A stretch of DNA of 64,000 bases from positions 9,114,001 through 9,178,000 of the forward strand of contig NW_024704758.1 in assembly GCF_018977255.1 (NCBI RefSeq). The letters are read 5' to 3'. Made by a program: the position numbers and the translations under genes. Positions 516 through 31,857 of this stretch are shown in pieces (position 1 is the stretch's first letter; each line of letters starts with the position of its first letter). Source of the stretch: Callorhinchus milii (taxonomy: Eukaryota). The notes under the pieces were generated by a model that made no database searches, had not been told where the DNA came from, and was given only the letters and a program-made list of their open reading frames with translations.

Positions 516-1115
516 ACCTCGTCTCTCTTATTTTTTCCCCTCTCTTAAAGGTGCTGAATCATCCTGGAGGCATCGACTGCTCTCCAATGACTCATAATCA
601 TTCCTTTATGGCTAACCCAGGCAGTGAGTGTAGGCAGTGAGTGCAGGCAGGCTATTTGAGCTACTTGACTGCGGATGCCATCACAGGTCTCATTGTTATC
701 AATACAGACTTTCTTGCCAGTGCATTGAGGTGATGTAGGACATAAGAAAGGAGAAGTGTGGTTTTGGCAGGAGTGACAGTATATATCTAAAAGCATTATA
801 AGCAATGCAAACATACAGCATTCCAAGCATTTTATTTAAAACGGATTAACTGTGAGTATGCTGTAAGATGAATAGCTATGGGAATGCTCTAAGCCAAGAT
901 AGTTTGCCTACAGAATACACAGCCACTTTATGGTATTCTCTTTTGAAGCATCCTCCCAACGTGAAAGATTCTGTAATCAAAAACAAGGATTCTTTATTTG
1001 TTAAGTTGTTGTGTTCAAAGATTAGTTAGATGTGGAAAACACTTGGGGATTTTGATAGAAGATGTTTGTTGTATGATCCTGACGTGCGTTGATATAAGAT
1101 GAATTTTGTTTTCAG

Positions 1116-1349
1116 TTTCCAACCCATCCTGGACCTCGATTCTTCCTGAGGAATGGAGCAACAGACATGTTTGGGAGTGGCTGCAGTTCTGCTGTGATCA
1201 GCATAAACTGGATGCAAACTGCATCCCTTTTGCCCAGTTCAATGTCAACGGCAGACAGCTGTGCAGCATGACTCAATCTCAGTTCATCTCTGCAGCTGGA
1301 ATTTATGGAGAAATCCTTTACAATTCCCTGCACCAATCGCAAAGCAAAG
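1116..1349 (+). CDS. ELF5: ELF5 PNT/SAM domain exon
   Basis: Encodes [29 protein letters not shown]...GRQLCSMT...[10 protein letters not shown], close to the ELF5 PNT domain. Acceptor ttgttttcag, donor AAG|gtaatg. 234 nt, phase 1-1. Confidence 0.93.
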
Positions 1350-2368
1350 GTAATGGTTTTATTTGATGACTTTGGCGACTCCACCAGATGAAATGTTTGT
1401 TTGGGAGGGAAAAGAAAGGTATTAAATGGGAAGAAGCAAACTAGGCATTTCTGACAATCATAATGCAATAAAGGATTCACAGGGAAATGCTGATAGCTCA
1501 ATGGGTAAATGCATAAGATCATACCCCGACTCGCCAACAAGCTCCCTCAGTCAGTGTCAGCCTAGGTTATCATTTCATATCGTCACGTGGAGCTTAAACC
1601 CACAACGTTTTGACCCAGGGACAACATGATCCCAGCCAGGCCAAACTCTCACAGATACTTGAATTGTTATAGACCTATGCCACTGAAACCTTCAGATCAG
1701 GAAGCTGTGGACTAATAGTATTGGTGTGTCAGACACCTCTGATCTCAGAACGGGATCCCTCTGGGCACATGAAATTCTGCAATAATGTTGAAAATGAGCT
1801 CATTTGTTTGTGGGTCACTGCATCCATAAAACATTTAGAGCCAACAGTCTTAATTAAGACCGTAGATTAAAATGGTTTCTTTGCTTCATTCAGCAGATCT
1901 CCCTCTGGTGTGCGACCCTGTTGACAAAGAACTTCATATCGATGAAAGTAAGTAAACAAGTCAAGCACTCGACTGAAATGTTTGCATTCTGGACATAAAT
2001 CTCTTCCAAAAATACTTGGACAGAGAGGTTGGGGAGCCAGTGGAGATTAATGAGGAAGTGTGATTGGGTGGGGTGAATGACTGGAGGATAGTGGAGCCGA
2101 GGGAAGATAGGACGCGGCGGGTGGCCGGGACCATTGGAGTCAAGGGAGGATGGATTTAATAGGTTTGTGGAGCTTGGTGCAGGAGAGGACATGAATTGCA
2201 CAATTCTGGATGGTCTGCAGCTTGAGTAAGAAGGGCTGGGGAGTCCGGTGAGCAGGAAGTTGGTTTAAAAGAGACAAAAATGATTATTATTTAAACTAAC
2301 CCTAGTGAATGTTCAACTATACCTTTTTACTTAAATTTAAGGGACTTTAAATTTGGAACAAAACGCAG

Positions 2369-2419
2369 GATGTTTCGAAGGAAGCCAAGAGCAGAGCATT
2401 CCTGCAAAAAAACAAGCTG
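2369..2419 (+). CDS. ELF5: ELF5 51-nt linker exon (GCFEGSQEQSIPAKKQA)
   Basis: cgcag| acceptor and strong CTG|gtgagt donor. Open, phase 1-1. Size matches the small linker exon recalled for mammalian ELF5. Confidence 0.7.
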
Positions 2420-3264
2420 GTGAGTGAGCCTGTTCCTGTTGGAACACAGTGCAAACTGACATATTTACGCTGGCGCTGGAAGCTGTTTGAGCTCAGCTTA
2501 GTCATCCGAATCTTCATTTTGATATTGTAATCATCATGTTAATAGAGTGCCAGGGGATCTTTAACGTTGACCTGAACAGAGAGATAGGATGTTGGGTTAA
2601 CGTATCAAATGAAGCACGGCACCTCCAACAACGCAGAGGCCTCCCCAACACTGAGGCAAACGTGCTGCCAACTAAACCAGGCTAACGCCTCAGTAACCCT
2701 GGGCTCCGGAAGGTAAAAAATCTGGAGGGATTATAAAGTATGATCAACTAATAGAGAGATTTCTGACAGATTAGATTTTAATCATCTGTTCATTTGAATA
2801 GCTTGATCTTTGGTAATGCCTCACCTTTGGTTGATTTGGTTGTGTCACGAAACCCTGCTCAACAAGTCAAAGTACCAGTCTACAAAGTTAGATAATGATT
2901 TCATGTGAAAAGAGTTTTCACATTTTTTTCATGACAGTGATTATTTGAGCTGAGGTAACCAGGCTGCCCAAGTGTCTGTGCACAAACTCATTAATCTGTG
3001 TGTTAGGCGTTGATCCTGTCGCTGAGGTTAGCTGTCACTACTGTAACCTGAACAATTGGTCCTTGTTGTGGAAAGCAAACCACATTCCCAGAAAAGCTCA
3101 TTGTTCTAGCTGCAGTGCAAAAGATAAGCCAAACTAATCATGAAATGAAATGTTACACCTGAACACGAGAGAAGTACAGGATCCAATTTAACTCTTTTGA
3201 ACACTGCAGCGGGCAAATACCCTAAAGCTCTGTTGGCATGTTTATACCCACAACTAAACACCAG

Positions 3265-3321
3265 GACAAGCCAGTGCCTACATAACCTTAAGAAGCTGCA
3301 TGACTTCAACCAATAAACCGG
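3265..3321 (+). CDS. ELF5: Tentative ELF5 57-nt linker exon (GQASAYITLRSCMTSTNKP)
   Basis: caccag| acceptor with a poor pyrimidine tract, donor CGG|gtaaat. Open, phase 1-1. The only phase-compatible candidate I found for the second linker exon. Confidence 0.4.
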
Positions 3322-4822
3322 GTAAATCAGCTTTGTATTGTATCTTAGAAAGTGTCAGTTCCTTGTATATATCTAATAAATAATAATAAATAAACTTTGA
3401 ATTTGATATAGCGCTTTTCATGTTTCTAGGTATAACCTTAACCTTATAATTACTAATTAATTAATTAATTAATTAATTGGTTAGGTTAATTGTGTAACCT
3501 TAACCAACCTAGTTTTGTACCTCAGGGCTGTTCATGATTGAGAAACCTGGCCTGCTATTGTATTTCAGGAAGTGGAGCGTGGTTTACATGTGGTTTAGTT
3601 AATTGAGATAAAACAGTGAGCTGTCCTGCAGACTCGATGAGCAATAAACACATAAGAAATTATCCTTCCTCCCTTCCTCTTCCCGTTTGGTTCCCAATAT
3701 CAATTTATTTATTATTTTTATTTCCCCATCGACCCCCTTTCAAGCAATTGATGAAGTTCAGTCTAAATAGAATTGTCGTCCAGAATTATCAGCCTTTTTA
3801 GAGGAATCTAATAAATGAAATAAATGACTTCCATTGCAGAGGTGATCTGACACATATTTGAATTGATTAATTGTCCTCAGCTCTTCGGGGGGCATTCGCC
3901 TAGAACACAATCAATTGGTTCCCCCATTTCAACTCTCCTCATTGACTCCTCTCTGCGTCTCTTCCATTATTTTCCCTCCTCGTCTCCTTGTGTCCAAAAT
4001 GGTTTCTCTCTGGCTTATAGCACAGCTCCAACAAATTTACCATGTAAATAGCAGAATAAATAACCGCCTTCCATAAACTAAGTTAATAAGTAACCGGAGC
4101 CTCTCCTTTTTGACTTGTAGTTAATAAATACATAAAAATAGATCGTCTCATGAACTGGTAAACAAATAAATAATTTCTCTTTTTTGAAGCTAATAAATAT
4201 GTAAAAAGTACTCTAACATTAGCAATATCAGTTACACAGCCACCGCGGATCACTGAGTTCGGTTATTCACTCTCTGCTGTCTTAAAGTTGCATTCAATGG
4301 CTATTTTTGTTAATTGCATTTATGAGCTCAATTCAGCCGGTGAAGCCACTGCCTAGTGTGAGCTGTTTCGTCCTGGAAAGTCCTAGGTTCAATCGTTAGT
4401 CTGCGTTGAGTTCTCTAGTTCCCTCTGATCTCAGCTGGAGCAGCAGTAGGTATGCAACAATAGACTGAACTCAGACATGGAAGAGGTGGCTGGGAACGAG
4501 AAAATCATTAAGTAATTAATACCATGGCATTCAACAACGACAACAACAACTTGCATTTATATAGCGTCCTTCACGTCGGACGGTATCTCGGAGGGCTTCA
4601 TATAGTTTTTAAGTAGCTATACTGCAGTAGATTAAGACGTTGGTCCTTTAAATCCTTTCCTTAGTTTGTTCCTCCATGTGCTACACTTGACCTGGAATCG
4701 TTGATGTAGTACAATAGTTGATGTTGGCTCTGGATGCCTCTAATTGGAAAGTGCTCCAACATGTAACACATGCAAGTCATTCTGGTAACGCAAATGTTTC
4801 TGATCTCTGGTTTCGCCCTCAG

Positions 4823-5018
4823 GTTTACAAAGTCATCATCTCTGGGAGTTTATCCGAGATCTCCTCCTCTCACCAGAGGAAAACAATGACGTTTTGGAAT
4901 GGGTAGACAGGAATGAAGGAATATTCAAAGTTTTAAAATCTGATTCTCTGGCAAAACTGTGGGGTCGTAGGAAAAAGAACGAGCGGATGACCTACGAGAA
5001 ACTGAGCAGGGCCTTGAG
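4823..5018 (+). CDS. ELF5: ELF5 ETS domain exon ([20 protein letters not shown]...[11 protein letters not shown])
   Basis: Classic ETS sequence with the ELF5-type [10 protein letters not shown]. Acceptor gccctcag, donor GAG|gtaatc. 196 nt, phase 1-2. Confidence 0.95.
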
Positions 5019-5828
5019 GTAATCGTGCTTTGCTTCTCCAGCAAACAGCAGCACCTTTGGTCCAATTTTATATAGAAAAGAATAAATGCACATCCATTGC
5101 AGTGTGTAAGAAGAGGTTAGAGACATGAGAGAGTGATGGGTTGAACTTCTATCTCGGACTAAATACTATTCTATTATTGCAAAATTTCAGATTGTCTAGA
5201 ATATGTCAATTTTTAAAAATTGAATTTAATACAATCTTTAATTTTGAAGCCGGATTTCTGTAAAGTTCTTTTCAGAAGCTACAATGGTAAAAACTAAATT
5301 CAAAATGTTTCCCAAATTCTGCAATCTCTAGAAATCTGAAATGCTATGTTAATAGAGGAAATCTAGACCCAGGTGGAAATTTACCCCTGAGGGATGTCTA
5401 CATTTTTGGAGATCTGCTCATGTGCTTAATTTAATGTTACCACAATGATTCACCTTCATACACAAATCACAAAGCTCTGCTGAAATGTCTGACACCTGAG
5501 ATCAAAGTGCCCAGAGGGATAGTCTGACTGAATATCTCCAGGTTCATGTGCCCATATGAAACTATGAAATTATATACGCCAAAATTATACCAGCCAAGTT
5601 TCGCACGCAAAGTATGCCGTCAATTCGCTTTACAGTATATCCTGTGAAGTGCTTTTGAGATGCCTCAATGATGAGATGCCTCAAGGATTATTATTATTGT
5701 TATTTTTATTATTAATTCACGTATGATTGGGACAGTGAATAAAGGGAGATGACTTATCGCAAGATCACAACACATAAACCAGATCCTTGTTGGATCAAGA
5801 TGTAATTTCATTATATTTTGCTTTTCAG

Positions 5829-5913
5829 GCATTATTATAAAACTGGGATTCTGGACCGAGTAGACAAGAGGTTAGTGTACAAGTTTGGAAGGAATGCTTA
5901 CGGCTGGAGATAG
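5829..5913 (+). CDS. ELF5: ELF5 last coding exon ([27 protein letters not shown])
   Basis: ETS C-terminal strands. Acceptor gcttttcag, stop TAG at 5911-5913. AATAAA at 6522 is a candidate poly(A) signal. Confidence 0.95.
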
Positions 5914-8099: not shown

Positions 8100-8325
8100 C
8101 TGTCCACCTGGCCAGGCTATGAGAGTATCACTCACAGTTTGTTCTGTGGTTAAGTACATGTGTGGCTGTTAGTTTTTACACGATAAAGAGGCAGGTCACC
8201 ACATCAGCTGTCACTGCAGAGACTAGAAGAACCAAATGCAGTTCCTGTTATTTCAGACTTCGCTTCATGACCTGAAGCCAAGCAGATGAGCAGCTACTCT
8301 GAAAAACACACTCTGCAAGAAAGAG
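8100..8325 (+). promoter_or_regulatory. RAG1: Candidate RAG1 promoter and non-coding exon 1
   Basis: E-boxes CACCTG 8105, CAGCTG 8205, CAGATG 8283. RUNX TGTGGTT 8145 and ACCACA 8198. GATAAA 8182. Donor GAG|gtaacg at 8326 could splice to the acceptor at 10434. Confidence 0.5.
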
Positions 8326-8794
8326 GTAACGTAGACGTCGTCGATTTTATTAACCTTTCTTCAACTCCTGAATGAAACTTTATGCAGCATTTATATTAGA
8401 AAACTTCCAACCAATATTCGTATATCTTATTAACTACGCGCCAATAAATGATGTGTACACATAGAAGACTGCACAAAAGGACCGATTGGATTTTTTTTCA
8501 GGTTTCTTTCATTTTGTAATAAAATTACTTGGTTTAAATGAACACAATCTGCTAAAGCGCTCAGCGATAAGAATGTTATGGTTTGTTTAAACTGGGTTAG
8601 AATCATTTTATAACAATCTTAGACTTATTTGCGAGAGTTTGCAGTTCCACTGTAAATGCTCTGGGACGATACCCTGCGTCAGGGACTCAAGTTATTGTTG
8701 TTGTAAACACCAAAGCCAGCAATAGTCTCTTGTGTGATGCATCATTTTTACTCTTACTAAGAAGAATGAGAAGAGAGAGAAGGGATGTGGACAC

Positions 8795-9120
8795 GTGGAG
8801 TCCTGGAGCTCAGTGGTTAGAGCCCTCGCCTCACAAGCGAGAGACCTGGGTTCGATTCCCGGCAGGGCAAAACCTTGGGCAAGTTTCCTTACTCCACACG
8901 CCTGATAATAATCCCTCAAGAAAAAAAACAATAACGAAATTAGTCACTTCAATCCAAGACTGTTTGTGGGACACTGCTGTGCGCAATTGGCTGCCGTATT
9001 TCGCCCACAAATATACAGTCAATTCAGTTTACAGTATATTCTGTGAAGCGCTTTGAGAGGTCTAGAAGACATGAAAAGCGCTATATCAAATGCAAGAATT
9101 TTTTTCATTATTTTTATTAT
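8795..9120 (+). mobile_element. Full-length tRNA-derived SINE in putative RAG1 intron 1
   Basis: A box GCTCAGTGG, B box GGTTCGATTCC, conserved body, tail gtgaagcgctttgag...agcgctatatcaaatgcaag followed by TTA-rich end. Confidence 0.92.
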
Positions 9121-10453
9121 GTACAATGCAGAATTGGTTCCAATCGGGACCGATTTCATTAACGTTTACAGTTACAGGCAATTTTTGGAAGAGTCAAATT
9201 CCTGTTGCTTGCTCTTAATAGAACTTGCATGATTGAAACTGGAAGCAGATATATAAGTTTGTAATCCATACATTGTTGACTGCACAGATATTAATTCATT
9301 CTTTACATACGTTAGAATAATTATACGTGATACGAAAAAACTGTTGTGGTTTAATGCATGCTTTCTTAAGAATATGCCGAGGGGAAAAAAAATCAAGTAC
9401 CCCATCTGAAAACACGATCAAAGTAGATTTGGTTTAAATCTTTACCTTTTTTTCCTATCTATTGCTGGCTATCTTGTATATCTCACTAAAGCGGTTTGGA
9501 AATGTCAGAGATTACTTCACATCAAACGTGTTGCATCGTGCCAAGTTCAAAAGTGGTAACTGGTTAATACCAATCACAGTACTACTCCTACGCTCGAGTG
9601 TAGGAGCGTAGGAGTAGTTCTGTGGATAAGCCCTCAGTATATCAGACATAAGATATGCTGTACTGGTGTTAGGAGCTAGATGGTGCAGCTGCATCAGCTA
9701 ATGCTTTTCTCTTCCAAGCAGCTTGTTGAAATCCTTGCTGGTGTTAGTATGCAACATGACAGGCTCCTAAATGCCACAATGAGTCACAGGCAAAATTATC
9801 CTCAGACAGTCATCTCCATCTATATTCGACAGAAGTATATTCGCAGGGAAAAAAAAAGCCCTGCTTTGATGCATTGCAGTGTGAATCACAAAATTTGCTG
9901 CATTTGAGGGTTGGAGAATAGAATCCCCAAGGACTTCAGGAATAAATGAGAGTGCATTATAACGGGTAAAGCTTAAGTCTTGGATCATCGTTATACACTC
10001 GATGGCACTTCTCTAACCAGGGGAAGGATTTTACTATATTCTGCTGACTCCATTTGATATTCATTTTTCACTTTGTGGCTGTTTGCGGGACATCGCTGTG
10101 CACACATTAGCTGTGGCGTTTGCCTAAAGAATGTAGTCACCACGCTTTACCTGTAATTCCTGTGAAGCGCTTTGAGACATCTTGATGATGTGACAAGGCC
10201 CAATATGAAACGCAAGGGTCGTTATCAGTAGAAGAGCAATCTTAGACTCATTTCCATAAGGCTTGAGTTTTCATTTGCCCTGCAGCAGTTAACGACTGAT
10301 TTTTGATTTCAGATTTCTAGACGATGAAAGATTAAAGTTTAGCTGTTGTAAACTGATGCGTGATAAGGCTGAGTGTTTTGCTGTCGAGAGTGAATTTTAA
10401 TTTTAAACTGTACGTCTTTTTGTGTCTTTGTTAGGTGTCAGCATTTGAAACAA

Positions 10454-13400
10454 ATGGAGATGCCATTGTGCAACATGCCTGAAAGGACGAGGTGCACAGA
10501 GACTGCGCCTTTCAGAAAAATCGAATGGGAAGACAAAATTTCAAAGGCAATACATAATGCCACGGAACCTTTAGTTACCATGGCTGCCCATAGCATGCAG
10601 TTTAAACTTTCTCCATCTCAAACCCAGACAATGGAGACCTTACCTTTGGAGACATTGCCTCTGGACAAGAAGACTTTGGAAGATAAGCCACAATACAACA
10701 GGTTTGTTCAGAAAAGCAAACCTTTGGAGTACACGCCAACGAAAACTCAGCTTCCTGAATCCAAGCAAGTGAAATCCAAATCTTTAGAAGAACACAAATT
10801 GCATTTGCAGAATCTCTGCCGCATTTGCGGAGGTTCCTTTAACACCAGCCGCTATGACATGAAGTATGCAGTCAGTGGCCCAGTCGATGACGTCACCCAA
10901 GATGTTCTTAGGAAAATGGGACATGGGGATTGCTTTTGGCCTGAGCTCGTCCATAACACCTTCAAAGTAGATGTCAGGAGAGATATGGAGACCGTTCACC
11001 CCACCCACTTCTGCCACAGCTGCTGGCGCATTGCAATTCAGATGATCAACAATACAAACAATGAAGATGCATTTTTTCCCATCAATAAATTTATGCACTG
11101 GAAGCCTCATTCCAACCACTGTAGAGTTTGCAACTCTTCAAAAGGAATTCGCAAGAGAAAGGGTCTGGGAAGAAGTCCGCAGGTCCCCAAAAAAGCAAAG
11201 GTTGCCATCGACCTTCCGATCAGACCAAAGGTTGTTAATAGAAGAGATCAGATGAACAGCACAAGCATTATGTTGGCTAAAAAAGTGGTCAACTGCAAGA
11301 AGCTCCATCTAAGTCCAAAGCTCCTTGTGGATGACTATCCCCACCACTTTCTCCAGTCGGTCTCATGTCAGGTTTGTGACCATCTACTTGCTGACCCTGT
11401 GCAATTACCATGCATGCATCTGGCCTGCAGAACATGCATTTTCAAATGCTTTGCAGTTCTCGGAAAGTATTGCCCAGTTTGCAGGTTTCCTTGTTGTTCG
11501 GCAGAGCTCACAAGCCCTGTCAAATCTTTCAGTCACGTTCTGAATTCCCTTGTGGTGAAATGCCCAATGGCAGACTGCAAAGATGAGATGAGACTAGATG
11601 AATATTCTCACCATGCCCAAACTCACAAAGAGACCAGAGGGAAATATGATTACTCACCAACAAACAAGGGTGGTCGGCCAAGGTTACACTTGTTGTCTTT
11701 AACACGAAGAGCTCAAAAGCATCGCCTGCGAGATCTCAAGCATCATGTTAAAGCTTTTGCAGAGAAAGAAGAGGGTGGAGACGTGAAGTCGGTTTGTCTC
11801 ACTCTGTTTCTACTTGCGCTGAGAGCTGCAAACGAACACAGGCAGGCAGACGAGCTAGAGGCTATAATGCAGGGAAGAGGATCAGGGTTGCTACCTGCAG
11901 TCTGTCTTGCCATTAGAGTCAACACATTCTTGAGTTGCAGTCAATACCATAAAATGTACAGAACAGTCAAAGCAACAACTGGGAAGCAGATCTTCCAGCC
12001 ATTGCATTCACTCCGAACTACAGAGAAAACTCTGTTGCCTGGTTATTTTCCATTTGAATGGCAACCTCCACTAGAAAATGTCTCTACTAACACTGAAGTA
12101 GGAATAATAGATGGTTTGAGTTGTTGGCCCCAGTGCATTGATGATTATCCGATGGACACAATTTCCCGACGGTTTAGGTACGATGTAGCACTTGCTGCAA
12201 CTATCAAAGATCTTGAAGAAGACATCTTGCAAGGTCTGAAATCACACGGAATGGATGAGTTTCAGAGTGGGCCATTCACTGTTGTGGTAAAGGAGTGTTG
12301 CGATGGAATGGGGGACGTCAGCGAAAAGCACGGATGCGGTCCAATTGTCCCAGAAAAGGCAGTGAGGTATTCCTTCACAATAATGAGTGTGAGCGTCACG
12401 GGTGAAAACAATGAAAATGTCAAGGTATTTGAAGAATTGAAGCCAAATTCTGAATTGTGCTGCAAACCTCTTTGCCTCATGTTGGCAGATGAATCTGACC
12501 ATGAAACCCTGACAGCAGTGCTGGGCCCACTCATCGCCGAAAGGAAAGCCATGAAGGCAAGTCATTTAATCCTTGAAATTGGCGATTTGCTCAGGTCTTT
12601 TCGATTCATCTTCCGAGGCACAGGGTATGATGAGAAGCTTGTGCGTGAAGTGGAAGGCCTTGAGGCCTCAGGCTCCATCTATGTTTGCACATTATGTGAC
12701 TCCACTCGTAGTGAGGCCTCAGTGAATTTGACCTGCCATTCCATAACCAGGAGCCACACAGAAAACCATGAGCGCTATGAAATTTGGCGATCAAACCCAT
12801 ATCGCGAGTCCCCTGAAGTCCTCCGCGATAGAGTGAAAGGCATCTCAGCCAAGCCTTTTATTGAAACTCAGCCCTCCATTGATGCCTTGCATTGCGATAT
12901 TGGAAACGCAACGGAATTCTTCAAGCTCTTCCAAGATGAGATTGGGGAGCTTCACATCAAGCCCAACCCGTCCAAAGAGGATAGGAAAAGGTGGCAAGTA
13001 CTGCTCGATCAGCATTTGAGAAAGAAGATGAATCTGAAGCCTATCATGAGGATGAATGGAAACTTTGCCAGGAAACTGATGACCAAAGAGACCGTAGAAG
13101 TAGTATGTGAATTAATTCCGTCTGAGGAGAGGCGAGAAATTCTCAGAGAGCTAATGTCACTTTACGTCCTGATGAAACCAGTGTGGCGCACCACGTTTCC
13201 TATCAAGGAGTACCCAGACCTTGTGCACCAATACAGCTTTAATTCCCAAAAGTTTGCAGACCTGCTCGCTACAAAGTTCAAGCACAGATATGAAGGGAAG
13301 ATCACAAATTACCTGCACAAAACTTTGGCCCACGTTCCTGAGATCATCGAACGAGATGGTTCCATAGGAGCTTGGGCGAGTGAAGGAAATGAATCGGGCA

Positions 13401-13621
13401 ACAAGCTTTTCCGACGTTTTAGGAAAATGAATGCGAGGCAGTCTAAAAGTTATGAGCTGGAAGATATCCTGAAGCACCACTGGCTGTACACTTCCAAATA
13501 TTTGCAGAGGTTCATGAATCAACACAATGAACTGAAACAATCAGTGTTTGCTTCCACACCATTTGACAGCAGCAGCCAAAATGATTCACCACCAGAGCCA
13601 CATGACTCCATTGATTTTTAA
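10454..13621 (+). CDS. RAG1: V(D)J recombination-activating protein 1, 1055 aa, intronless CDS
   Basis: CRICG central domain, C3HC4 RING, zinc finger A, nonamer-binding [18 protein letters not shown], catalytic D (12302), D (12629), E (13391), CTLC and HKTLAH zinc ligands. Acceptor tctttgttag ends at 10434. First ATG is 10454; the ORF track starts at an upstream TTG. Confidence 0.99.
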
Positions 13622-13952
13622 GTTCGGTTGTTAGGCTGAAATTGGTTCTAACTATCTTTCTTTAAGCACAGTCGACTGTGAACAGTCTGTACTGTGTGCA
13701 GAAAAGTTGGGTGTATCATGGCCAAACCTTTTGAGTAGAGTTGGGGTTGGTGAAAAGGCCCCAACAGGGAAATTATGGTCTAAGTTGGATTGGCTCAGTT
13801 GATAAGTACTAACTGCAGTAAGAATAGAAAGGTGATCTAACCTTTCAATATTGTTTGTGGCCATATTCAGAGATGGTGAGAAAGTGAAGTGTGATTTAGA
13901 TGTGAAGGAAGAAGTGATTTCTGTGACAGTTGAGGTGAAAGGCAGGGATACT

Positions 13953-14060
13953 TATAATAATCCTCATATTTAATATAGCGTCGTTCATGTCGGAAAGACG
14001 TCTCAAAGCGCTTCACAGGATCCATTGTAAAGTGCAGTGACTGTATATTTTAATAGGCTT
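13953..14060 (-). mobile_element. 5'-truncated SINE tail in RAG1 3' region
   Basis: (AAT)n-cctcatatttaatatagcg...gacgtctcaaagcgcttcacag. Similar tails at about 3375, 5595, 7875, 10075, 15843, 24760, 26408, 27245, 30590, 39365, 42700, 50232, 51360, 53528 and 54960. Confidence 0.85.
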
Positions 14061-17000
14061 TTTCTTGAATGCCTAATTTGAAATGATCAAATTGAACAAC
14101 GGGACTTTGTTTATTGGGATTTTCAAATCAGTTGACTCACACCATTATTTTGATGTATTAATGCTTGCTCTGGGCGCTTATCCAACATTTGCTTTCAGTG
14201 GGTAATGGGAGAATACTTTAACCGTTTAGCCCTTTGCTATTTTGCGATGTGTAAAGGGAAGCGATGTAGGAGTGAATGCTTACTGCACTATTTTAAAGGA
14301 AACAAAACTGCAGTGGGTTTGAAAATGATTTGGAAGATTTGTCAGAAAGTTTGGACAATTTATCAATAAGGTATTTGAATCACGACACATAGCAAATGGG
14401 TACCGTCTCTGAGCACTTAAATGTTCAATTGATCTGAAGTGCATTGCTGGTACATAGGCATTTTATTTTAGCAGCATTTCTGTGTTATAGGTTGGTGGCT
14501 GATGCATTCAAACATGAGTTGTAGTGTTTCCTTTTTTATATCGATAATTATTACCTTGTGTCCACGTTATGCAATTTATAGCTGGCTATTTTGTAACTTT
14601 CGAAGTAACAGGAATATGCTGTTATTAATGATCAATTTTGTGTTGTCTACTGCAAAGCATAATATAAGAATGGATTTTGAACGGAGAGGCAATAAAAGTG
14701 ATGAGAAGGTTTAAAGGCTTTGACTTACGGTGGGGTTCAAAAAATAAATAATCAAAAGGCAATGATGAGGCTCCTTGCATGTTTTCAATATCTGATTAAC
14801 ACTGGCACAATATACAATGAATTGTTAATTTACTGTACTCACTACCTATCTATTCATTGTCAAACTAGATACCTGTAAAACATAAATCACAATTTAGTGG
14901 TAACATGGATTGTTTTTCATACAGTGTCTAATTTGGTACTTGACTTTGCTTTGTATAAGACTAAGTATTGATATATTAAATTCCATGATGAATGCACATC
15001 GCCTCATTTATTATTGATTTGTTTATTAACCCTATATTGCCAAGTGGCCAATTTCACAATCTGCTGCAATGCATCCCAGTCCTGACTCTGTGTTCAACAC
15101 TCGCGAGACATTGGCAGTAAGTAGTTAGCATCAAGATAAAGGAATTTTTGCAAAGCTTTGTGCATTCAAGCAACATTTGTGCAAAGTGACAGATAAATGG
15201 AAGGTTGTGTTACTTCATGTCAAAAAAAAGTTTTTAAATTGCTTTTTAACTTTTTAGGTGTTGAAGGTAATCCCAAAGTGTAGCACAGAATAACAGCAAT
15301 ATACAGAATTTAACCAGGCGAAGAATAGGTTGTTTCACCTTTCTAAATGATTCATGAAAATGTAGTTAGGAGTAAATTATAGCAGGATATTGTAACCATT
15401 TTCTAAATTCATTAAAGCTATTTTATTGTGCAAAAGATTGTGCAGTGCTACCTATACTGGCTTTGTTCATGCATCTTACGTTTTTTGCTGTAAAAACCTT
15501 TCTACACGGCTTCTAAACTTTGCATTCAGGCGATCACAATGAGATTTTTTGCTGTATATTGAGAAGTAATCAACCTGAAAGCATTCATTTGTATTCATAA
15601 GGAACAATCACCCTGATATTGTTCTGCAATTTTTATTACTTATGTGAGGGATTAAAAATGAAATTGAATCAGTTCCCCAAAATAGTTTATTTGCGATATT
15701 CTACAAGCTATTGCATTAGAAGATGACAACATTTGCATTTTGTTGCAATTTACTGTATTATGTTCTCAAAGCCTGCTTTTCTGGGAATTGTGTTTGCTAT
15801 GCATGTGGTACAAAAAATGCAACTTACCTCTTCCAACATGACTAATAATAATAATCCTTGCATTTGATATAGTGCCTTATCACGTCGTTGAGACATCTCA
15901 AAGTGCTTCACACAATATAATGTAACGTTGATTGACTGCAAAACAGGTCAGGTTGTAATAATTGTTTGTGTTTAGGTCTAAAAATGAATTTCAATTGGAA
16001 AGTAGCCTATCTGATTAGAGCTTGCACCATAATGTTAATTGGTCTGTATTTTGCTAATTCTGCTTATCGCTTATGTATTTGGTCAACTTTTGATGTACTT
16101 TTTTTAAAAAAAATAAACATTTGAGACTTTTAAACATATTATTTTGTGCAATCTATGATTTACAACACTCTTTAAAAGATTAGCTTCAATTACTTAGGTT
16201 TACTATTTTTGATTCAGAATTCAGGACGCAGCAGCAACAACAACAAATTGCACTTGTAATGCACCCCTCACACAAGATAACATCTTGTGAGGAGCAAAAC
16301 ACTGTGATTTCATACTCAACTGGGCCCTTTAGTGAGAGAAGCACCCAGTGGAAGCTGACATTTTTCCACAGAGGGAAGGAAGACAAATCACTTTTACTTT
16401 CCTAGCAATTTGTTCGGAGTGAGGTTGGCAGTATTATACGTTGGGACCAGACCGATCAACCTGAGAATGATGTGGATGGAATTTAAAGGAGGGGATAAAA
16501 TATCCTTAAAACTGAACAGGAAACATATTTGAAAAAGAAATGAGATTGCTAGCAAGCCTGGTCCCTCATTTGTGATTGAAATGAACATATAAGGAGGTAT
16601 AATTATTTTTTTACCATTGGTCAGAAACAGTATGAAAGGCTTCTACCTTAAAGACATGAATGAAATAAGTTTGGTTCATCTGTAGTACCAACGACATTAG
16701 CCTGATACATCTCCATTAGATGCATAACCTGAGGCATGGTTGACAGCTTGTCATTATTGTGATGTATGCTTGTGGGTAAGCAATTGCTACATGCTGTTAG
16801 GACCACAAGTGAAATGAATTTGGAAATAGCTTATCTACGGGACTGTGTCCAACCCAAATCTCTGCGATTTAATATCCATAACATTAGGCTAAAGTCTGTT
16901 TCAAGGCTGTGTGGAGGAGGATTACCTTGGTTGCTGAGCAGAAGCATCCACAAGTGAAATGAGTTTCTGTCAATCCCTTGTTTTATCTCACAGCAGGAAT

Positions 17001-18353
17001 GATTCCTTTACTTTAAGACACCCGAAATGCATTGCAGCTTCAGTGAACAGATGTTCGGAGCACATAACAATCTCAGTTTGAGCATTGCGATGGGATTGCT
17101 AAAAGGCATTCCCCTTTCATGGTGCAGCTATGAATTGATCAGTCCCTAAGCTGATTTTTCCATTAACTGCCAGAAATGTGATGACTTCCATTTTTCACAA
17201 CTGAAACAGTCATTACAAGTTTCCAAAACTTTAAAGAAGTTCATAATTTATGGATTTTTCCCCATGACATTAAAGCACAGGAAAACAAGGAAGAGGCCAA
17301 TTGACCCATCAAGCTCCCTTTGAATGGTGATTCTGTACACTTGATCTGTAATCTTATTCTAGCATTCCAGAAAAACAATTGAATTATTATTTTGCTTGGG
17401 CTAATAAAGAGGTGGAGTCGGTAAGGTGTGTAAAAACAATGCTTAAAACAACATTTGTGAATAGAAACCAGTTTAAAAGAATCCACCTTTGCAGGGTTGT
17501 ATGGTCTCCACTGGGCAGCAGTATCAAATAGGTTGTGAAGCTTGAGGTAAGGTCTAAAATATTTTAGAAATTGGATCCCAATTTCTGCAGACCATTGTTT
17601 CCTTGTTTGTTATGTTATAAGATGCTTTTTGTTGTTTAAAATACTGGACTCAAAGGAGAACATTTATGATCGGAACTGACACTTTTATTTCTTCAAATAC
17701 AGTATTTGCACAACACGCGTACAATAACAATGTCTTAACATACACAGCACCAAAAATAAAGACTTTCTTTCAAAAAGTCAGTAATGAATGATTTGATTTT
17801 TTGCACCAATACTAAATTCAAGGCAATAGCACCAACATAACGCTGACTGAATTTGCCAAATGGCTTTTAAAAGAAACGCTAAACAATTTAACCTTACAGT
17901 TACATGATTTTCATTGTTTTCCTTCTTAGAGAACATTTCAGATTTATTGCATTGAAATAGGTTGTGTTGCTCTTTGAATCCTGAGAATCTTATCCAATTC
18001 CTTATGCTAAAGAGCGACTTTACCAGAAATGATACACAGTTTACTTTGCTAAACAATGAAATGACACACAGTTAAAAGTTCTAGTTTAGATTAACATGTG
18101 GGTTGTCGCATATAAATTACCCAATTTTTTTACAGTAATCCGCAGGCTATTTGTCTAAAACCTACTACATGTACAATACATAGACTTTATGTTTAATTTT
18201 GAGCGCAGGTTAACATAATTTTTTTTTAATGCTGAAGAGGGCTTGAAAGGTGGCTGAGAATTCTTCCAGACTGCAGAATAATTCAATAATTCTAAACATC
18301 ACTTTCAAACTTGCTCTACTGTTGATTTATTTTCAAGTGAACCAATCTCAATT

Positions 18354-19916
18354 TCATTCAAACAGCCTCTTCACAAAGCTCTTCTTCATCGGTGTCTTCT
18401 TCAGACTGGATGGCGACTTTTTACGCGGGGATTTCATTGGCGTCCGTTTCATTATTTTTATCTTCTTCTGCAGGGTTTCAACTCTTTTCTCAATACAATG
18501 AACATTGCAAAAGTACTTGGTCTTCTCCTGAGAAAGGTGTATCAGCTCTGACTCCGAGAGACCCATACACTGGGCATGTACCCAGTGCCCACCACCTCCT
18601 CCACTGGAGCAGAAGATCATAGCCGGTTTATTGAGTTCAGTGGAGTAGTAAGGAACCCAAGTGTTGACGTTTACACTACAGGTGACAATGCACTTAATCC
18701 AGTAACCTTCCTCATCACCATTATCTAAGTATATTTCGTCGTCGCTATAATCATGGGTTTCAACGACAAAGCGAAATTCTTCTGAATCTTCGAATGCGCT
18801 AGATTCCTCTGGATCAGTAAAGGATTCCTGGCTGACAAGAATGCGGCTTCTCCCCTCTGGCTGTCCGAAAGTTGCAATGTAGAAGTAATTTGCTTCAGCC
18901 GTATCTGGCTTGTTTTCCCCAGGAATGCCCATTAATACCGCTCGGTTTCCCATGTCACTTCCAAACCAGCTCTTGCTGGCTCTGAGGTCACTGGTCCATG
19001 CCGGGGGTTCCTTGTCCAGGATCTGAATGTTATCATTTTCAAGTAGGATGGTGTTGCAAGCCATTCGCTTCTGAGTCTCTGATTCATAGCCACCGACAAT
19101 TATAAACTCATTGCTGCCAGCCTGGGTCACTATTGCACTTGATACTGAGATGCCATTATTGAGTACTGTGCAGGTTATACTCGGATGTGGGCCTAACAGA
19201 TCAACCTGTAGGCTAAGCAATCGTGGAGGACGGTGATTGGATCCCATGGAATGACCCCCAAATACGTAGATGGTTTCATTTTTTGCTACTGACGCGTGGA
19301 ATGAAAATCCATCATTGATCTCTGGAAGCACATGGGCTGTGCAGTGGCTGGTGCTCAAGTCTATTATGTATACATGTGGCGTACAATCCAATACGCTGTT
19401 CCAGTTTTCTGTGGTTCTTTGTCCAGGTGGCCGGTAATATCTACCTCCGACCAAGATACACATGGTTCGTCCTCTGCTCTGAACCACATTAATGGTGTGA
19501 CCATATCTTCCTTGGGGGACATTTCCTTTGAGATCTTTTTCAATGCAACAGAGTGATGTCTTCTTACTACCGGTATTACTAACCATCATGAGGTACAGTA
19601 GATCAGACAACTCATTGTTTGGCATTCTGCCGCCATGAATGAGGTAAAGAGGGCTTTTGGATTCCGAGGGATCTGAGTAATGAGTAATTGCAGGACAACG
19701 TAGCGGTGGCAGGTAACAAGAGTCACTGGAAAATGAAACTGCTTTGAGTTTCAGGTCTTGTTCTTTCAAGCGGAGGAGGAAGACTCCAGAGGAGCAGGAT
19801 CTTTTTGGCCATCCTTTCTGGCCAAAAAGAAACACTTCGCCATTGAAATTCATCAGGGAGAACCCGGGATGTATCAGTGCCCCATTGGCGCTGGGTGAAA
19901 CCATTTGCAGAGTCAT
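18354..19916 (-). CDS. RAG2: V(D)J recombination-activating protein 2, 520 aa from the canonical MTLQM start
   Basis: MTLQMVS..LIHPGFSLMNF..FGQKGWPKRSC Kelch core, acidic hinge FEDSEEF, PHD finger GYWIKC..C..HWVHAQC..YFC..H, C-terminal KKSFVKRLFE. An in-frame upstream ATG lies at 19976. Confidence 0.99.
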   Translation of the reverse strand: MTLQMVSPSANGALIHPGFSLMNFNGEVFLFGQKGWPKRSCSSGVFLLRLKEQDLKLKAVSFSSDSCYLPPLRCPAITHYSDPSESKSPLYLIHGGRMPNNELSDLLYLMMVSNTGSKKTSLCCIEKDLKGNVPQGRYGHTINVVQSRGRTMCILVGGRYYRPPGQRTTENWNSVLDCTPHVYIIDLSTSHCTAHVLPEINDGFSFHASVAKNETIYVFGGHSMGSNHRPPRLLSLQVDLLGPHPSITCTVLNNGISVSSAIVTQAGSNEFIIVGGYESETQKRMACNTILLENDNIQILDKEPPAWTSDLRASKSWFGSDMGNRAVLMGIPGENKPDTAEANYFYIATFGQPEGRSRILVSQESFTDPEESSAFEDSEEFRFVVETHDYSDDEIYLDNGDEEGYWIKCIVTCSVNVNTWVPYYSTELNKPAMIFCSSGGGGGHWVHAQCMGLSESELIHLSQEKTKYFCNVHCIEKRVETLQKKIKIMKRTPMKSPRKKSPSSLKKTPMKKSFVKRLFE

Positions 19917-20104
19917 GGTCGCACCGGGCGGGCGGGCGGGGGGGGTGACTGTGTCGCCTTTGGATGCAAAAGACATGATTAAAAAATTGGGGTAAAAACA
20001 GACAAGAACGTGTTGGCAGGTTTAATTGCTCTGTGAAAAAAAAATGAATGGCACCCGCCCAAAGCCAAGGGCAATGAGAGAGAAAAAACACAAAAAACCG
20101 CCCG

Positions 20105-20145
20105 ATTGGGCGCGAAACCCGCCCCATTGGGCGCGAAACCCGCCC
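20105..20145 (+). repeat. Tandem duplication ATTGGGCGCGAAACCCGCCC x2, period 21
   Basis: Exact 20-mers at 20105-20124 and 20126-20145, with a partial third unit just upstream. Confidence 0.95.
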
Positions 20146-20205
20146 AAATCTGGGACAGCAGATTGTTCCTTGAGCGGGTGGCGATGGCCGGCGCCGGACC
20201 CCACC

Positions 20206-20312
20206 GCTTGGCCTGATGGGAATTGTAGTCGATGGTGGGGGGGGGGGGGGTGTGTGGGGGAGGGAGAGGAGGGGAGAGGGGCCGGCGAGCCACTACATGT
20301 CCCGGCGAGCAC
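20206..20312. promoter_or_regulatory. Two divergently oriented ZNF143/Staf (ACTACA-TCCCA) motifs
   Basis: Minus strand GACTACAATTCCCATC (20215-20230) and plus strand ACTACATGTCCCGGCGAGC (20292-20310). Confidence 0.75.
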
Positions 20313-20329
20313 CGCGCCGGCCGGTTGCT

Positions 20330-20513
20330 AGGAGCCGGGAGCTGCGGGCAGGAGGAGGAGGAGGAGGAGGGAAGAAGGAGGAGCAATGGAGGAGAGACGT
20401 GAGGGCCCGAAGCCACGACCGAAAAAAAGGTACCAAGAACCCCCCCCCCCGCCACGCACACACGCAAAAAAATAAAAATAAAAACAAGCCCCTAAAGACA
20501 AGTTCTATTAAAA
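20330..20513 (+). other. IFTAP: Candidate non-coding exon 1 of IFTAP/NWC
   Basis: Lies downstream of the plus-strand ZNF143 motif and ends at donor 20430 or 20514. The start is approximate. A non-coding first exon is required by the acceptor at 30167. Confidence 0.45.
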
Positions 20514-20751
20514 GTGAGTGACGACTCTAAGTAAATAAATAAATAAATAAATAATAAAAAAAAATGGTGGCAAGAAAGCAGCTCCGTTGGGGCCCTCGAT
20601 CAGCAACGTCTGGGCCTACATCATCCATCCATCCATCTCCACACACACACCCACCACACACACACACACACACACAGTCAATTCACTTTATATCGTCACT
20701 GTGTTCGGCTTCCAGACGCCGCTCAACCACCTGATGTTGATAAGGCGCTAA

Positions 20752-21163
20752 ATAATAACAATAATAATAATAATAATAATCATCCATCCTCCTCCTCCTC
20801 CTCCTCCTCCTGGCATTTGATACAGCTCCTCCTCATCGCGTCTCCGAGACGTCTCACGCGCGGCTTTGGCGCTCCCAAGCGAATCGACCTGCGTGTGCCT
20901 TGCGGGCGGAATCGAAATTTTTTGCGAAGCGCCACGGCCGAGGCCGCGCCGCGGCGTCCCCGCAAACAGCCGCGGACTGAAGTGACCCGATTTCTTTTTG
21001 CTCTCTCTCTCTCTCTCTCTCTTGAGGGATTATTATCGGGCGTGTGGGCTAAGGAAACTTGGCCAAGGTTTCGACCCCCACCCCCCCACCCCCCGCCGGG
21101 AATCGAACCCGGGTCTCTCACTTGCAAAGCGAGTGCTCTAACCACTGAGCAACAGGACTCCAC
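20752..21163 (-). mobile_element. Full-length tRNA-SINE nested in an older plus-strand SINE tail
   Basis: Intact head (ggaatcgaacccggg...aaccactgagcaacaggactccac) and (AAT)n tail at 20752. The outer copy is split into ...gataaggcgct (to ~20748) and aaatgcgaggattatt (from 21164). Confidence 0.8.
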
Positions 21164-21172
21164 AAATGCGAG

Positions 21173-21173
21173 G

Positions 21174-21219
<46 letters not shown>
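21173..21219 (+). repeat. (ATT)n microsatellite, tail of the outer SINE
   Basis: About 15 ATT units seen directly. Nearby: (CA)n 20640-20675, (CCT)n 20786-20810, (CT)n 21002-21021. Confidence 0.95.
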
Positions 21220-21220
<1 letters not shown>

Positions 21221-23854
21221 CTTTGTGACCACAGGAGACAAACAGGAGCAAAGCAAAGGCATGGGATATGAGTTTTTTTCAAAAAAAGAGTTAAAAGCCA
21301 CCCATACCATTCTGCTGATAAGAATAACAATGTTTACACAAACAACATCCCCGGGGGTATGTTTTTAATGGATAAGGTTTGAAGGCACTGTATAGGTCAG
21401 CAGATCCTGAACTAACTAGTGACCAAACATGGGGGATGGTGGGGTGGGGGGAGAGGTAAGTGGGGTCTCCTTGGAACTCTGCTGGCTCCAAGATGACAAT
21501 GATTGCAAAGGAATATCGAAATCAAGTCAACCCTTTTCGATGGCCCAGCTCCGGAGCCAGGCAGGTCCCCGGTACTCTAGGTTTCCGCTGATTATAGACC
21601 AGACATGATGCCAGCAATGACTTTGGATGAGGAAGTAAGATTGGCTAGGACACTGGATGAAATTCTCTATTTCTTTGAAATAGTACTAAGGGACTTTTCA
21701 ATTCCATCTGAAGGACCAGAATAAGTAGATCAGGACCCTTATTAGAAGGACGGCACGTTTAATAGTATTCTTCTTTATCAGACCTGCACTGAAGTATCAG
21801 ACTGGATTGCTAGCTCCTCTGACCCAATGGAAGACTGACACAAGGCATCTGGCTTGACTTATCTGGAGTGCAGCATTGACTATTATTTTCGGCAGGTTCA
21901 GGTAATTGATGCCATTATGTATATCTAATACATCAATTACAATAAGTTTATCAAATGACATTGTAACGTTAATTTTGAAATATTATTTTAAAACATACTA
22001 GTTGGTCTTTTAATTTTACCTAATTTATATTGTTTTTCATCACAGCTATTATTGGAAGATAAACCACGTTTGCTAAATTATTTCAAAGAACCTGTTTTAA
22101 TCAATGAATCATTGCATAACATTTAATATTTTGTAGCTTGCAGTGAATGTTTGAACATTGTGATCTTCTCAATTCCATTAGTGCTGCTCTGTTGTTCCAT
22201 AACTGTGAGCATGCAGGTTTGTCCTGTATTACTAATTTAAAAGTCTTTTGTCTGCCTTTGATTTCTGCCATTATGCATCACCTCCTCATGAACAGTGTAT
22301 TTCATTTCTCATTTGATTTTTCATCAGCCTGTGTGCTACCCATAGATGAAGACCACATGAAGCTTTGAAAGTGGTTTCACCTTTACAAGAGAACACAGGT
22401 ATTAAATTAACTACTCTTTGGGCCTGCCTGCTGCGTTTTAGTGGCAAACCTAAAGTAAGGTTCATTCAAGCGGGGGATCATAGAGGTACATATTGCACCA
22501 AGTAATGGTGTTAACCACTGAGCCACCTGCTCTGCTGAGTAATCAATTTTTCAGGTCTTGTTTACTTCGACAATCATCCCTTTAAAGAATCTAGCTGGCT
22601 TTAAACAACCACAGCGCTATAGCACCTGGTCTGATCCTTTATTCAGTAAAGCTGATGATAATGTTAGCTCTTCATTTCTTGTATACTTGTTTTCTGCAGC
22701 TTTTGTTCAATCTGAAATTTAAACTCTTGAATTTTGTATTAAATGTCCTGACTGACATTATTATTGTTCCCTTAAAAGCCAGCAAAGAACCATGGTATGC
22801 TTAATACTTGTAGATGGTTGACTGGGAACGGCTAAACTGCTACTTGTATGAGTTAAGAAAGAAAGTTTGTATTAGGACTCGGGGATCAATATCTAACTCT
22901 TTATTGTGAAATGGATATTCTATATCCTGGGCATATACTATTATGTGAGCTTGTGGTGTCCTTGGAGTCTAATATGTATGGAATAGTTGTGGGAGAGAGA
23001 ACCGCCTAATCTGTGATTCGTCTTACTATAATGTAGCTTTCGGAAATGGATTTTTATAGATTTGTAACAGAGGATCAAATTAGAGAAAAAGTAATTCCTG
23101 ATTTGTGGATAAATTGTGGTGTTTTGCTTTGCCACTGCTGATAGTCTATGTTAAATGTATTTCAAGCACTCTTCTCCCTTTCCACTGTAAATGTTCTACC
23201 ACTGCCAATGGACTCATCAGTGAAGTTTGTACATTTTGAATTAATCCATTTCTAATGCAGGGTTTCTCATACTTACAACTTTTGGACACACAGCACTATT
23301 TGTTTTTAGTCAAAACTGATCAGAGATTGTAGTTGTTGAGTGGTTGACATCTAAAGTTGCACACAAAAAAGACATAGTCATTCTCCCCCATTTATGTCAT
23401 GCAGACTTACAGTTGTGCTTTTTGGATTGTAACAATATGTAACTTTATAGTAAATACTATATTATCCTGGCTACTGAAGGAAAAATAACTAGAATCTTAG
23501 TCCATAAAGTACTGTATCTTCAATTGAATAGTTGTTTTCCCTATCTTTTTTCAAATTGTCCCCACAAATATCTGTAACTTAATAGCAACCACACTTGCAA
23601 TGACTCAATGATTACATGTATAGATGAGGTTTGTTCACAGAAACGTTTTTCCTGGATAAGAAGTCAGTTATACAGCTACGCCTCAATTACATTAATTATA
23701 ATGTAATTATAATTAATTGCTTTTGATAAGTCCACTACAATAATCTTAGTTCAATAGAGTTGTAGTAGATTTTATGCTGTAAATTTTTTTTTAAGCATAG
23801 GTTAACTAACAGGTAAATACAAATAGACATAACATTATAGCAGGTCATCCTTAC

Positions 23855-30211: not shown

Positions 30212-30311
30212 ATGGAGCAGGAAATAATTCAAGATACTTTGGATAGATTTTGCAGTAGCCACGAGCAAACGTATGATGAATTTCTGGAATCCTTTCTTTA
30301 CTTGAATGAAG
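30212..30311 (+). CDS. IFTAP: IFTAP coding exon 1 (MEQEIIQDTLDRFCSSHEQTYDEFLESFLYLNE)
   Basis: Matches the C11orf74/NWC N-terminal motif (LD.F...HEQTYD.EFL..F). Acceptor ends at 30167, donor AAG|gtatgt. Confidence 0.92.
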
Positions 30312-30827
30312 GTATGTGTATCTGTGAGAATATAATACTGTGTTTAAATAATGATTACGGTTATTGCGAACACTGGTCACTTGATTTTGGCACTCCATTG
30401 CATTCTTGGAAGAACATTGCCATCCTTTAGATGAAAACAAGGTCCTATCTGCTTCAGAGTTTCTCCTGATGTCCTTGACAACAATCCTCCCGATAACTTG
30501 GTCATTCACCTCCTGACTGTTTGTGTCACATCAATGTATCCATGTTGCCTGTGTGTTTTCCTACCAATTATATTCGTTATAATTTACGGTAATTACCATA
30601 AAGTGCTTTCAGACGTTTCAACGTTCCAGGTGTTGTATCAAATGCAAGGTTTTGATATTGATTTTACCAATATGGACTAGTAAATTTATTGCAATATTAT
30701 AGTTAATGACCTAGTTAGAGGGCAGTTTGAGCAGTTGCTGGCTCAAACTGCCCTATGACCAGCTTATTAGCTCCAAAAACTGGCTGTCAAATGGCTTTTT
30801 CATGATGAAATTGGCTTCCATTTACAG

Positions 30828-30970
30828 GAAACCTGAAGCGACAGAAGGCAGTACCTCCAGAAATTGGTGGTGAAGCAGAGGATGATGATGACAGTCCACC
30901 CCAGAGAAAAGAGTCAGTAGATTCTGTACTAAATATACAGAAGCTAAATATATGCAAGCATGTTGAAGAG
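30828..30970 (+). CDS. IFTAP: IFTAP coding exon 2
   Basis: Acceptor catttacag and open frame GNLKRQK...KHVEE. Needs a phase-0 end, which the GC donor GAG|gcaggt at 30971 provides. Confidence 0.75.
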
Positions 30971-31300
30971 GCAGGTATTCAGTCTTGGCCAGATATGAGC
31001 AATAACTTGCTGATTTAGAGATTAAATTACTTTAAATTATTAGGTAAGATGTAGCTTTTCTAAGACCGTATGTTGTTTTATTTTTCTAATTTTATAGATT
31101 TGTTTCTAGCTGTCCAAGACAGTGATTTTAGTACAATATCTTGATTTATTTTTAAGGAAGCAATAGAATAAATGCTACTTTTCAAAGAAGAATTAAAAAA
31201 GTTTTCAAAGTCCTTCTATTGTGTGCTATAGTGGACTCTACTATGAAGCTTCTCTGCAAAACAGAATTTCTTCCACTTTTAATTTTTTTTTGCTTTGCAG

Positions 31301-31372
31301 TTCATTATTGATGAAGGATTGAAGGTTGGTAGCTTTCAAGAAGGGGACTTGTCACTCGCTGGAAGGATTAAG
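31301..31372 (+). CDS. IFTAP: IFTAP 72-nt exon (FIIDEGLKVGSFQEGDLSLAGRIK)
   Basis: Strong acceptor tttttttgctttgcag and donor AAG|gtaagc. Open only in phase 0. Confidence 0.75.
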
Positions 31373-31797: not shown

Positions 31798-31857
31798 TAC
31801 CACATAGAAACAGGAGTAGGCCATTCAGCCCCTGTACTGATCTGTACCTCAAGTCCA

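Follow-up and report, generated by a model that had tools for sequence, protein, structure and literature searches.

The RAG1–RAG2 recombinase locus of Callorhinchus milii, the elephant shark: intact coding exons, conserved non-coding blocks and flanking genes

The 64-kb stretch of DNA analysed here (positions 9,114,001 to 9,178,000 of contig NW_024704758.1, hereafter the window) almost certainly carries the domesticated RAG1–RAG2 V(D)J recombinase locus of Callorhinchus milii, the elephant shark. The identification builds on what was observed directly: which genes are present, their intactness, their orthology, the purifying selection acting on them, the species of origin, the order of the genes and the absence of transposon ends. 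The RAG locus of C. milii is already known, and is annotated in public assemblies and protein databases.

Two open reading frames (ORFs) in the program-made ORF list define the locus. On the forward strand, an ORF occupies 10445–13621, and its first ATG, at 10454, opens a protein of 1055 residues, RAG1; on the reverse strand, an ORF occupies 18354–19976 and contains an internal conserved start, MTLQM, at 19916, which gives a protein of 520 residues, RAG2. Their stop codons are turned towards each other and separated by a spacer of 4732 nucleotides, and the convergent, tail-to-tail arrangement given in a preliminary description of this DNA is exact to the base. As the genes converge across the spacer, both 3' untranslated regions (UTRs) must fall within it. 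The window contains no N, the RAG pair is present in one copy within the 64 kb searched, and the E-values of the RAG1 and RAG2 matches, 0 to 1e-185, exclude chance. The features concerned are as follows.

10454–13621, forward strand: RAG1 coding sequence, 1055 residues plus stop, in one coding exon (ORF, domains, residues and trees)
18354–19916, reverse strand: RAG2 coding sequence, 520 residues plus stop, in one coding exon (ORF, domains, residues and trees)
13622–18353, no strand assigned: RAG1–RAG2 intergenic spacer, 4732 nucleotides (ORF spacing)

The domain content of both proteins is that of the jawed-vertebrate recombinase. RAG1 matches the Pfam RAG1 core with 1232 bits (profile positions 2–637 of 653) and RAG1_imp_bd with 208 bits, together with zf-RAG1 and the C3HC4 RING, while RAG2 matches the Pfam Kelch core (RAG2) with 491 bits over profile positions 1–338 of 339, as expected of a six-bladed Kelch protein, and RAG2_PHD with 131 bits. 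In comparisons with solved structures, mouse RAG1 aligns with the RAG1 of the window over its full length with 1453 bits, mouse RAG2 aligns end to end (residues 1–520) with 619 bits, and the amphioxus RAG1-like transposase (RAG1L; PDB entry 6b40) reaches 272 bits. The intact DDE triad, RING, nonamer-binding domain (NBD), Kelch core and PHD finger named in the preliminary description are therefore all present.

With the mouse numbering taken from the alignments to solved structures, and with each residue letter checked in the translation, the catalytic residues of RAG1 are D617, E680, D726 and E980, corresponding to mouse D600, E662, D708 and E962. The zinc ligands of the ZnC2 and ZnH2 modules are present as C745, C748, H955 and H960, and the nonamer-binding motif GGRPR begins at residue 406. 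R866 corresponds to mouse R848, and E667 and S981 correspond to mouse E649 and S963, all in the states found in jawed vertebrates; these residues have been described as regulatory adaptations that restrain transposition and enforce coupled cleavage, and the mouse RAG1 mutations R848M and E649V activate transposition (PMC10462144). In RAG2, Y405, M433 and W445 of the PHD finger correspond to mouse Y415, M443 and W453, which bind histone H3 trimethylated at lysine 4 (H3K4me3), and an acidic hinge lies at about residues 366–403. Mouse RAG1–RAG2 (PDB entries 6oem, 9jpu, 3jbw and others) shares the order of domains, the catalytic D/E/D/E residues, the zinc ligands, GGRPR and the RING, and likewise R848, E649/S963, the RAG2 Kelch core, the acidic hinge and the three PHD residues; the mouse genes are also convergent, with a single coding exon each and with IFTAP/NWC beyond RAG2. 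The proteins differ from those of mouse in the first 100 N-terminal residues of RAG1, which diverge, and in a GG insertion in the PHD finger of RAG2. Over the aligned parts, the identity to the mammalian proteins among the matches listed (platypus and bat) is about 64–66% for RAG1 and about 53–55% for RAG2. Taken together, the alignments support the proteins of the window as full-length orthologues of the subunits of the jawed-vertebrate V(D)J recombinase.

RAG1 is the DDE nuclease subunit, with its nonamer-binding domain, its RING and zinc dimerisation domain and its ZnC2/ZnH2 modules, and RAG2 is the six-bladed Kelch cofactor, with an acidic hinge and a PHD finger predicted to read H3K4me3. 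Judged from the homologous complex of mouse, the two proteins would assemble into a heterotetramer, which would bind a 12- and a 23-nucleotide-spacer recombination signal sequence (12-RSS and 23-RSS), nick the DNA at the heptamer and produce hairpin coding ends, and this cleavage would start V(D)J recombination in developing lymphocytes. The enzymatic activity and the lymphoid expression of both genes are thus presumed by analogy with the mouse system.

Focusing on the origin of the sequence, the best full-length matches of RAG1 are all from Chondrichthyes, with identities of 76% to Heterodontus, 74% to Scyliorhinus, 74% to Amblyraja and 73% to Rhincodon, and a RAG1 fragment of 589 residues recorded in UniRef for Callorhinchus milii is 100% identical to the RAG1 of the window. 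For RAG2, the identities are 74% to Heptranchias, 68–71% to other sharks and rays and 59% to the coelacanth. One contig only, MU249848.1 of GCA_018977255.1, is on record as encoding the exact RAG2 protein, and positions 8354–29916 of the window agree with this contig at 21563 of 21563 bases; the accession is that of the IMCB elephant shark assembly, and the name of the species is taken from the UniRef entry.

The position of both proteins was examined further in phylogenetic trees, that of RAG1 being a maximum-likelihood tree with four invertebrate RAG1-like proteins (two from Amphiura and one each from Branchiostoma and Diadema) as the outgroup. The RAG1L proteins lie outside gnathostome RAG1, on very long branches; rooting within the vertebrates is consequently unreliable, and only unrooted splits were used. 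The gnathostome clade has a support of 100, the window falls within Chondrichthyes with a Shimodaira–Hasegawa-like approximate likelihood-ratio (SH-aLRT) support of 100, and it is sister to the six elasmobranchs with an SH-aLRT support of 99. In the RAG2 tree, the split of Chondrichthyes has a support of 100 and the window is sister to the elasmobranchs with a support of 97. For both proteins, this is the position expected for a holocephalan. It is extremely improbable that the sequence derives from a bony vertebrate, or from an elasmobranch instead of a chimaera, since UniRef lists under the name of C. milii a protein to which the RAG1 is 100% identical, the identities to sharks and rays are only 68–76% and those to bony vertebrates are at most 59–69% among the RAG1 and RAG2 matches listed, and both trees place the window as sister to the whole set of elasmobranchs sampled. 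The protein comparison and phylogeny proposed beforehand as a check therefore place the proteins neither with the invertebrate RAG-like (RAGL) transposases nor inside the bony vertebrates, and the earlier guess of a cartilaginous fish, which is borne out by the best matches, the C. milii fragment and both trees, can be sharpened to a holocephalan.

Both genes are under purifying selection. In codon alignments with Heterodontus, Amblyraja and Heptranchias, the ratio of nonsynonymous to synonymous substitution rates (dN/dS) is 0.12–0.17, with dS at about 0.9–1.4 and hence near saturation. These values bear on whether the locus could be a pseudogene or an artefact of the assembly, decaying or without function despite its intact look. 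Such a copy would have to combine full-length, uninterrupted RAG1 and RAG2 ORFs with the retention of all of the catalytic, zinc-binding and histone-reading residues, a low dN/dS against sharks and skate and a sequence identical to an independent public record, and it can be given practically no credence.

A transposon of the ProtoRAG type that is still live or was active until recently, in which target-site duplications (TSDs) and terminal inverted repeats (TIRs) enclose the pair in the order TSD–TIR–RAG1L–RAG2L–TIR–TSD, would also explain the convergent genes, an arrangement shared with RAGL transposons. It would gain further from an inverted repeat which was found in a scan of 7–23.5 kb and which brackets the RAG pair, with arms at 8795–8921 and 21020–21163 that are 88–89% complementary. 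These arms are, however, the tRNA-like heads of a short interspersed element (SINE) with an (ATT)n tail. When the SINE copy at 8701–9200 was compared with the window by blastn, more than 20 copies or fragments were recovered in both orientations across all 64 kb, and a survey of the elephant shark genome found a tRNA-derived SINE to be its commonest repeat, with homology to 7–8% of the genome (PMC1845163). Because the SINE is so common in both the window and the genome, the bracketing is regarded as a coincidence, and the arms, as two of many dispersed copies, were rejected as TIRs. The two copies are as follows.

8795–9118, forward strand: copy of the tRNA-derived SINE within the presumed 5' intron of RAG1, carrying the left arm of the inverted repeat (repeat scan and blastn)
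20760–21163, reverse strand: diverged, GC-rich copy of the same tRNA-derived SINE upstream of the RAG2 coding exon, carrying the right arm (repeat scan and blastn)

Apart from this SINE pair, which is the sole inverted repeat to bracket the RAG genes, no TIRs ending in CAC were found around them, and there was accordingly no TSD to score. A heptamer–spacer–nonamer scan gave no match to a 23-RSS-like pattern and four weak 12-RSS-like matches, with three mismatches each, none of which flanks the genes and one of which falls within the coding sequence of RAG1; the pattern scans yielded no 12/23 RSS-like pair. In a Pfam survey of the 127 stop-to-stop ORFs of at least 70 residues outside the RAG genes, no second RAG or Transib fragment, no transposase and no reverse transcriptase was detected. 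The proteins themselves also speak against a transposon, as RAG1 carries the jawed-vertebrate states at R848 and E649/S963 and both proteins fall inside Chondrichthyes, far from RAG1L, and so does the surroundings of the pair, with a gene order including IFTAP that is the same in gar and with synteny to both skate and gar. Amphioxus ProtoRAG and the invertebrate RAGL transposons (BbRAG1L, PDB entry 6b40) likewise have a convergent RAG1-like/RAG2-like pair with a homologous catalytic core. The window differs from them in the lack of TIRs or a 5-bp TSD, in being a single syntenic locus and in carrying the jawed-vertebrate NBD and the residues corresponding to R848 and E649/S963, with an identity to RAG1L of only about 30%. 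The chance that the pair is a mobile element is therefore vanishingly small, and the view that it is a domesticated recombinase, already taken before these comparisons, holds in the absence of TIRs, TSDs and any grouping with RAGL.

No data point argues against the domesticated recombinase locus as such, and two caveats are to be set on the other side of the scale. The first is a public RAG1 model on MU249848.1 of 1098 residues, which starts at window position 9680 and includes an intron of about 645 nucleotides in the region 9680–10434. The 43 residues that it adds at the N-terminus match no Pfam family and are without counterpart in the RAG1 of other Chondrichthyes. Shark and ray RAG1 proteins start with MEMPL or MKMPL, and the ATG at 10454 gives MEMPL; the longer model was therefore set aside for its unconserved N-terminus, and 10454 is likely to be the start of RAG1. 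The second caveat is that RAG2 has no Thr-Pro at the alignment column of mouse T490, the cyclin-dependent kinase (CDK) phosphodegron, a difference from mouse which is accompanied by TPMK and SPRK motifs a few residues downstream of that column (residues 480–520; window 18354–18450, reverse strand). The start of RAG2 presents a comparable choice, as an in-frame ATG lies at 19976, 20 codons upstream of the start adopted here (19917–19976, reverse strand) and still within the predicted coding exon; of the two, 19916 is favoured by its conserved N-terminus.

The preliminary description had called both genes intronless. This is correct for the coding regions of RAG1 and RAG2, each of which lies in one exon, and probably incorrect for the genes as wholes, since candidate splice acceptors just 5' of the coding sequences and conserved blocks further upstream suggest 5' non-coding exons. 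The elements in question are listed here.

8124–8419, forward strand: conserved block upstream of RAG1, candidate promoter and non-coding exon 1 (matches in Heterodontus, L006, and Amblyraja, L005)
10433–10434, forward strand: AG, candidate splice acceptor for the coding exon of RAG1, 19 nucleotides 5' of the ATG (a pyrimidine tract followed by ttag/GTGTCAGC)
20031–20032, reverse strand: candidate splice acceptor of the RAG2 coding exon, strong, tttttttttcacag/AGC (predicted from the sequence)
22479–22721, reverse strand: conserved block upstream of RAG2, candidate for the promoter or exon 1 of RAG2 (match in Heptranchias)

The block at 8124–8419 is single-copy and matches the Heterodontus and Amblyraja loci at equivalent upstream positions, and the conservation within it stops at a shared donor, GAG/GTAACG, which places the end of the exon at 8325. 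The ends and the length of the public RAG1 model fit an exon start at 10435. For RAG1, a non-coding exon 1 with a promoter and a 2.1-kb intron would fit the pattern of other vertebrates. The block at 22479–22721 is also single-copy in the window; it is 76% identical over 250 nucleotides to positions 2919–3165 of the Heptranchias locus (L004), with a weaker match in Scyliorhinus canicula (L003). On this evidence, each gene would consist of a 5' non-coding exon, an intron of about 2.1–2.4 kb and one coding exon.

Two further non-coding elements may be relevant to the regulation of the locus.

16665–17013, no strand assigned: single-copy, intergenic, conserved non-coding block with a RUNX core (match in Heptranchias)
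19800–21200, no strand assigned: CpG island in the presumed RAG2 5' intron, candidate IFTAP/NWC promoter (composition)

The intergenic block is 73% identical over 350 nucleotides to positions 16264–16612 of the Heptranchias locus, in syntenic orientation and 4.7 kb downstream of the Heptranchias RAG2. It contains, at 16802 on the forward strand, one of the two RUNX cores (ACCACA) of the spacer, and this core is conserved in Heptranchias. The Rag1–Rag2 intergenic silencer of mouse needs a Runx site lying close to the 3' end of Rag1 (PMC4419350), and the block may be the counterpart of this silencer, which is offered as a lead rather than as a finding; it could just as well belong to a long 3' UTR. 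In gar, blastn detected none of the three blocks (8124–8419, 16665–17013 and 22479–22721), and a blastn comparison of 13.6–31 kb of the window with the gar locus returned matches to the RAG2 coding sequence only. A look-up of the coelacanth RAG2 locus returned nothing on record.

The space between the RAG2 coding exon and the block at 22479–22721 contains the CpG island. Its GC content is 0.43–0.62 and its observed/expected CpG ratio is 0.76–1.26, compared with about 0.35 for the window, and it consists in part of the GC-rich SINE copy and of simple repeats. The mouse NWC promoter is situated in the Rag2 intron, and in lymphocytes methylation silences it (PMC4157847, PMC3035778); since this site matches the place of the CpG-rich block in the presumed RAG2 intron, the island is a candidate NWC promoter, with a putative role here by analogy. 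The conserved blocks and the CpG island may have regulatory roles. That they reflect a regulatory layout of the RAG locus already present in the last common ancestor of jawed vertebrates, with a silencer counterpart at 16665–17013, promoter-like blocks and an NWC promoter in a CpG island, is an unlikely reading.

The preliminary description had further pointed to both flanks being visible. They are indeed seen, with the correction that they consist of ordinary genes, an ELF5-like gene on one side and IFTAP/NWC on the other, and not of transposon ends.

1103–5913, forward strand: 3' part of an ELF5-like ETS gene upstream of RAG1 (Pfam, structure and skate matches)
30212–44229, forward strand: IFTAP/NWC gene beyond the 5' end of RAG2 (Pfam IFTAP, two exons)

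The only credible matches in the Pfam survey of the 127 ORFs were to SAM_PNT, Ets and IFTAP. In the ELF5-like gene, a PNT exon lies within 1103–1363 (SAM_PNT, 82.7 bits) and the ETS exons lie at about 4823–5018 (Ets, 79.5 bits) and 5829–5913, the latter being the last exon. The spliced ETS domain is closest to ELF5 (1wwx), with 160 bits compared with 126 for EHF and 125 for ELF3. The last exon is 85% identical to positions 176–281 of the Amblyraja locus, where a called gene ends 9.7 kb upstream of RAG1 in skate, and because skate has this matching ETS exon upstream of RAG1, the adjacency of the ELF5-like gene and RAG1 is shared across Chondrichthyes. In human, the neighbour is TRAF6. No TRAF6-like sequence was found among the surveyed ORFs, and none was seen between the ELF5-like gene and RAG1; in contrast to the mouse system, the upstream neighbour here is the ELF5-like gene, with no TRAF6 seen within 10 kb.

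Of IFTAP, the first and last coding exons only were located, the first with an ATG at about 30212 and the last at 44074–44229 (Pfam IFTAP, 42.6 and 64.6 bits). A distance of about 10 kb separates the first coding exon from the ATG of RAG2, and the gene is head to head with RAG2 and on the strand of RAG1. IFTAP is NWC, described as the third gene of the RAG locus that has been conserved in evolution (PMC3035778, PMC8007930), and in the three-gene locus of mouse it likewise adjoins the 5' end of RAG2 on the strand of RAG1 (PMC3035778, PMC4157847). The order of the genes in the window is the ELF5-like gene, the convergent RAG1 and RAG2, and IFTAP, the order of RAG1, RAG2 and IFTAP being the same in gar (L007), where IFTAP is likewise head to head with RAG2 and RAG1 converges on RAG2. 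As a separate observation, the window also contains another interspersed repeat, with two copies, at 36216–36635 and 53831–54043, both on the reverse strand, that have in common a pseudo-ORF motif, (G)RAFSH-AP-LWN-LP.

Among the elasmobranchs compared (Amblyraja radiata, Heterodontus francisci, Heptranchias perlo and Scyliorhinus canicula), the genes are orthologous and convergent with single coding exons, and the protein identity to the window is 68–77%. Shared non-coding blocks lie on the upstream side of both RAG1 and RAG2 and in the intergenic region, and skate has the same ETS last exon. The loci differ mainly in size: the spacer is 4.7 kb here, compared with 7.9 kb in gar and 16.4 kb in skate, and the distance between RAG1 and RAG2 exceeds 10 kb in catshark and sevengill shark, so that the elephant shark locus is much more compact. 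RAG1, RAG2 and IFTAP/NWC together with the candidate promoters span about 36 kb of the window.

In conclusion, the locus adds no new biology, being already in public records. The conserved blocks and the CpG island, the adjacency of the ELF5-like gene to RAG1 and the short spacer provide modest leads for the comparative study of RAG regulation, and the practical value of the locus is that of a compact reference, convenient for comparing the regulatory elements of RAG loci.

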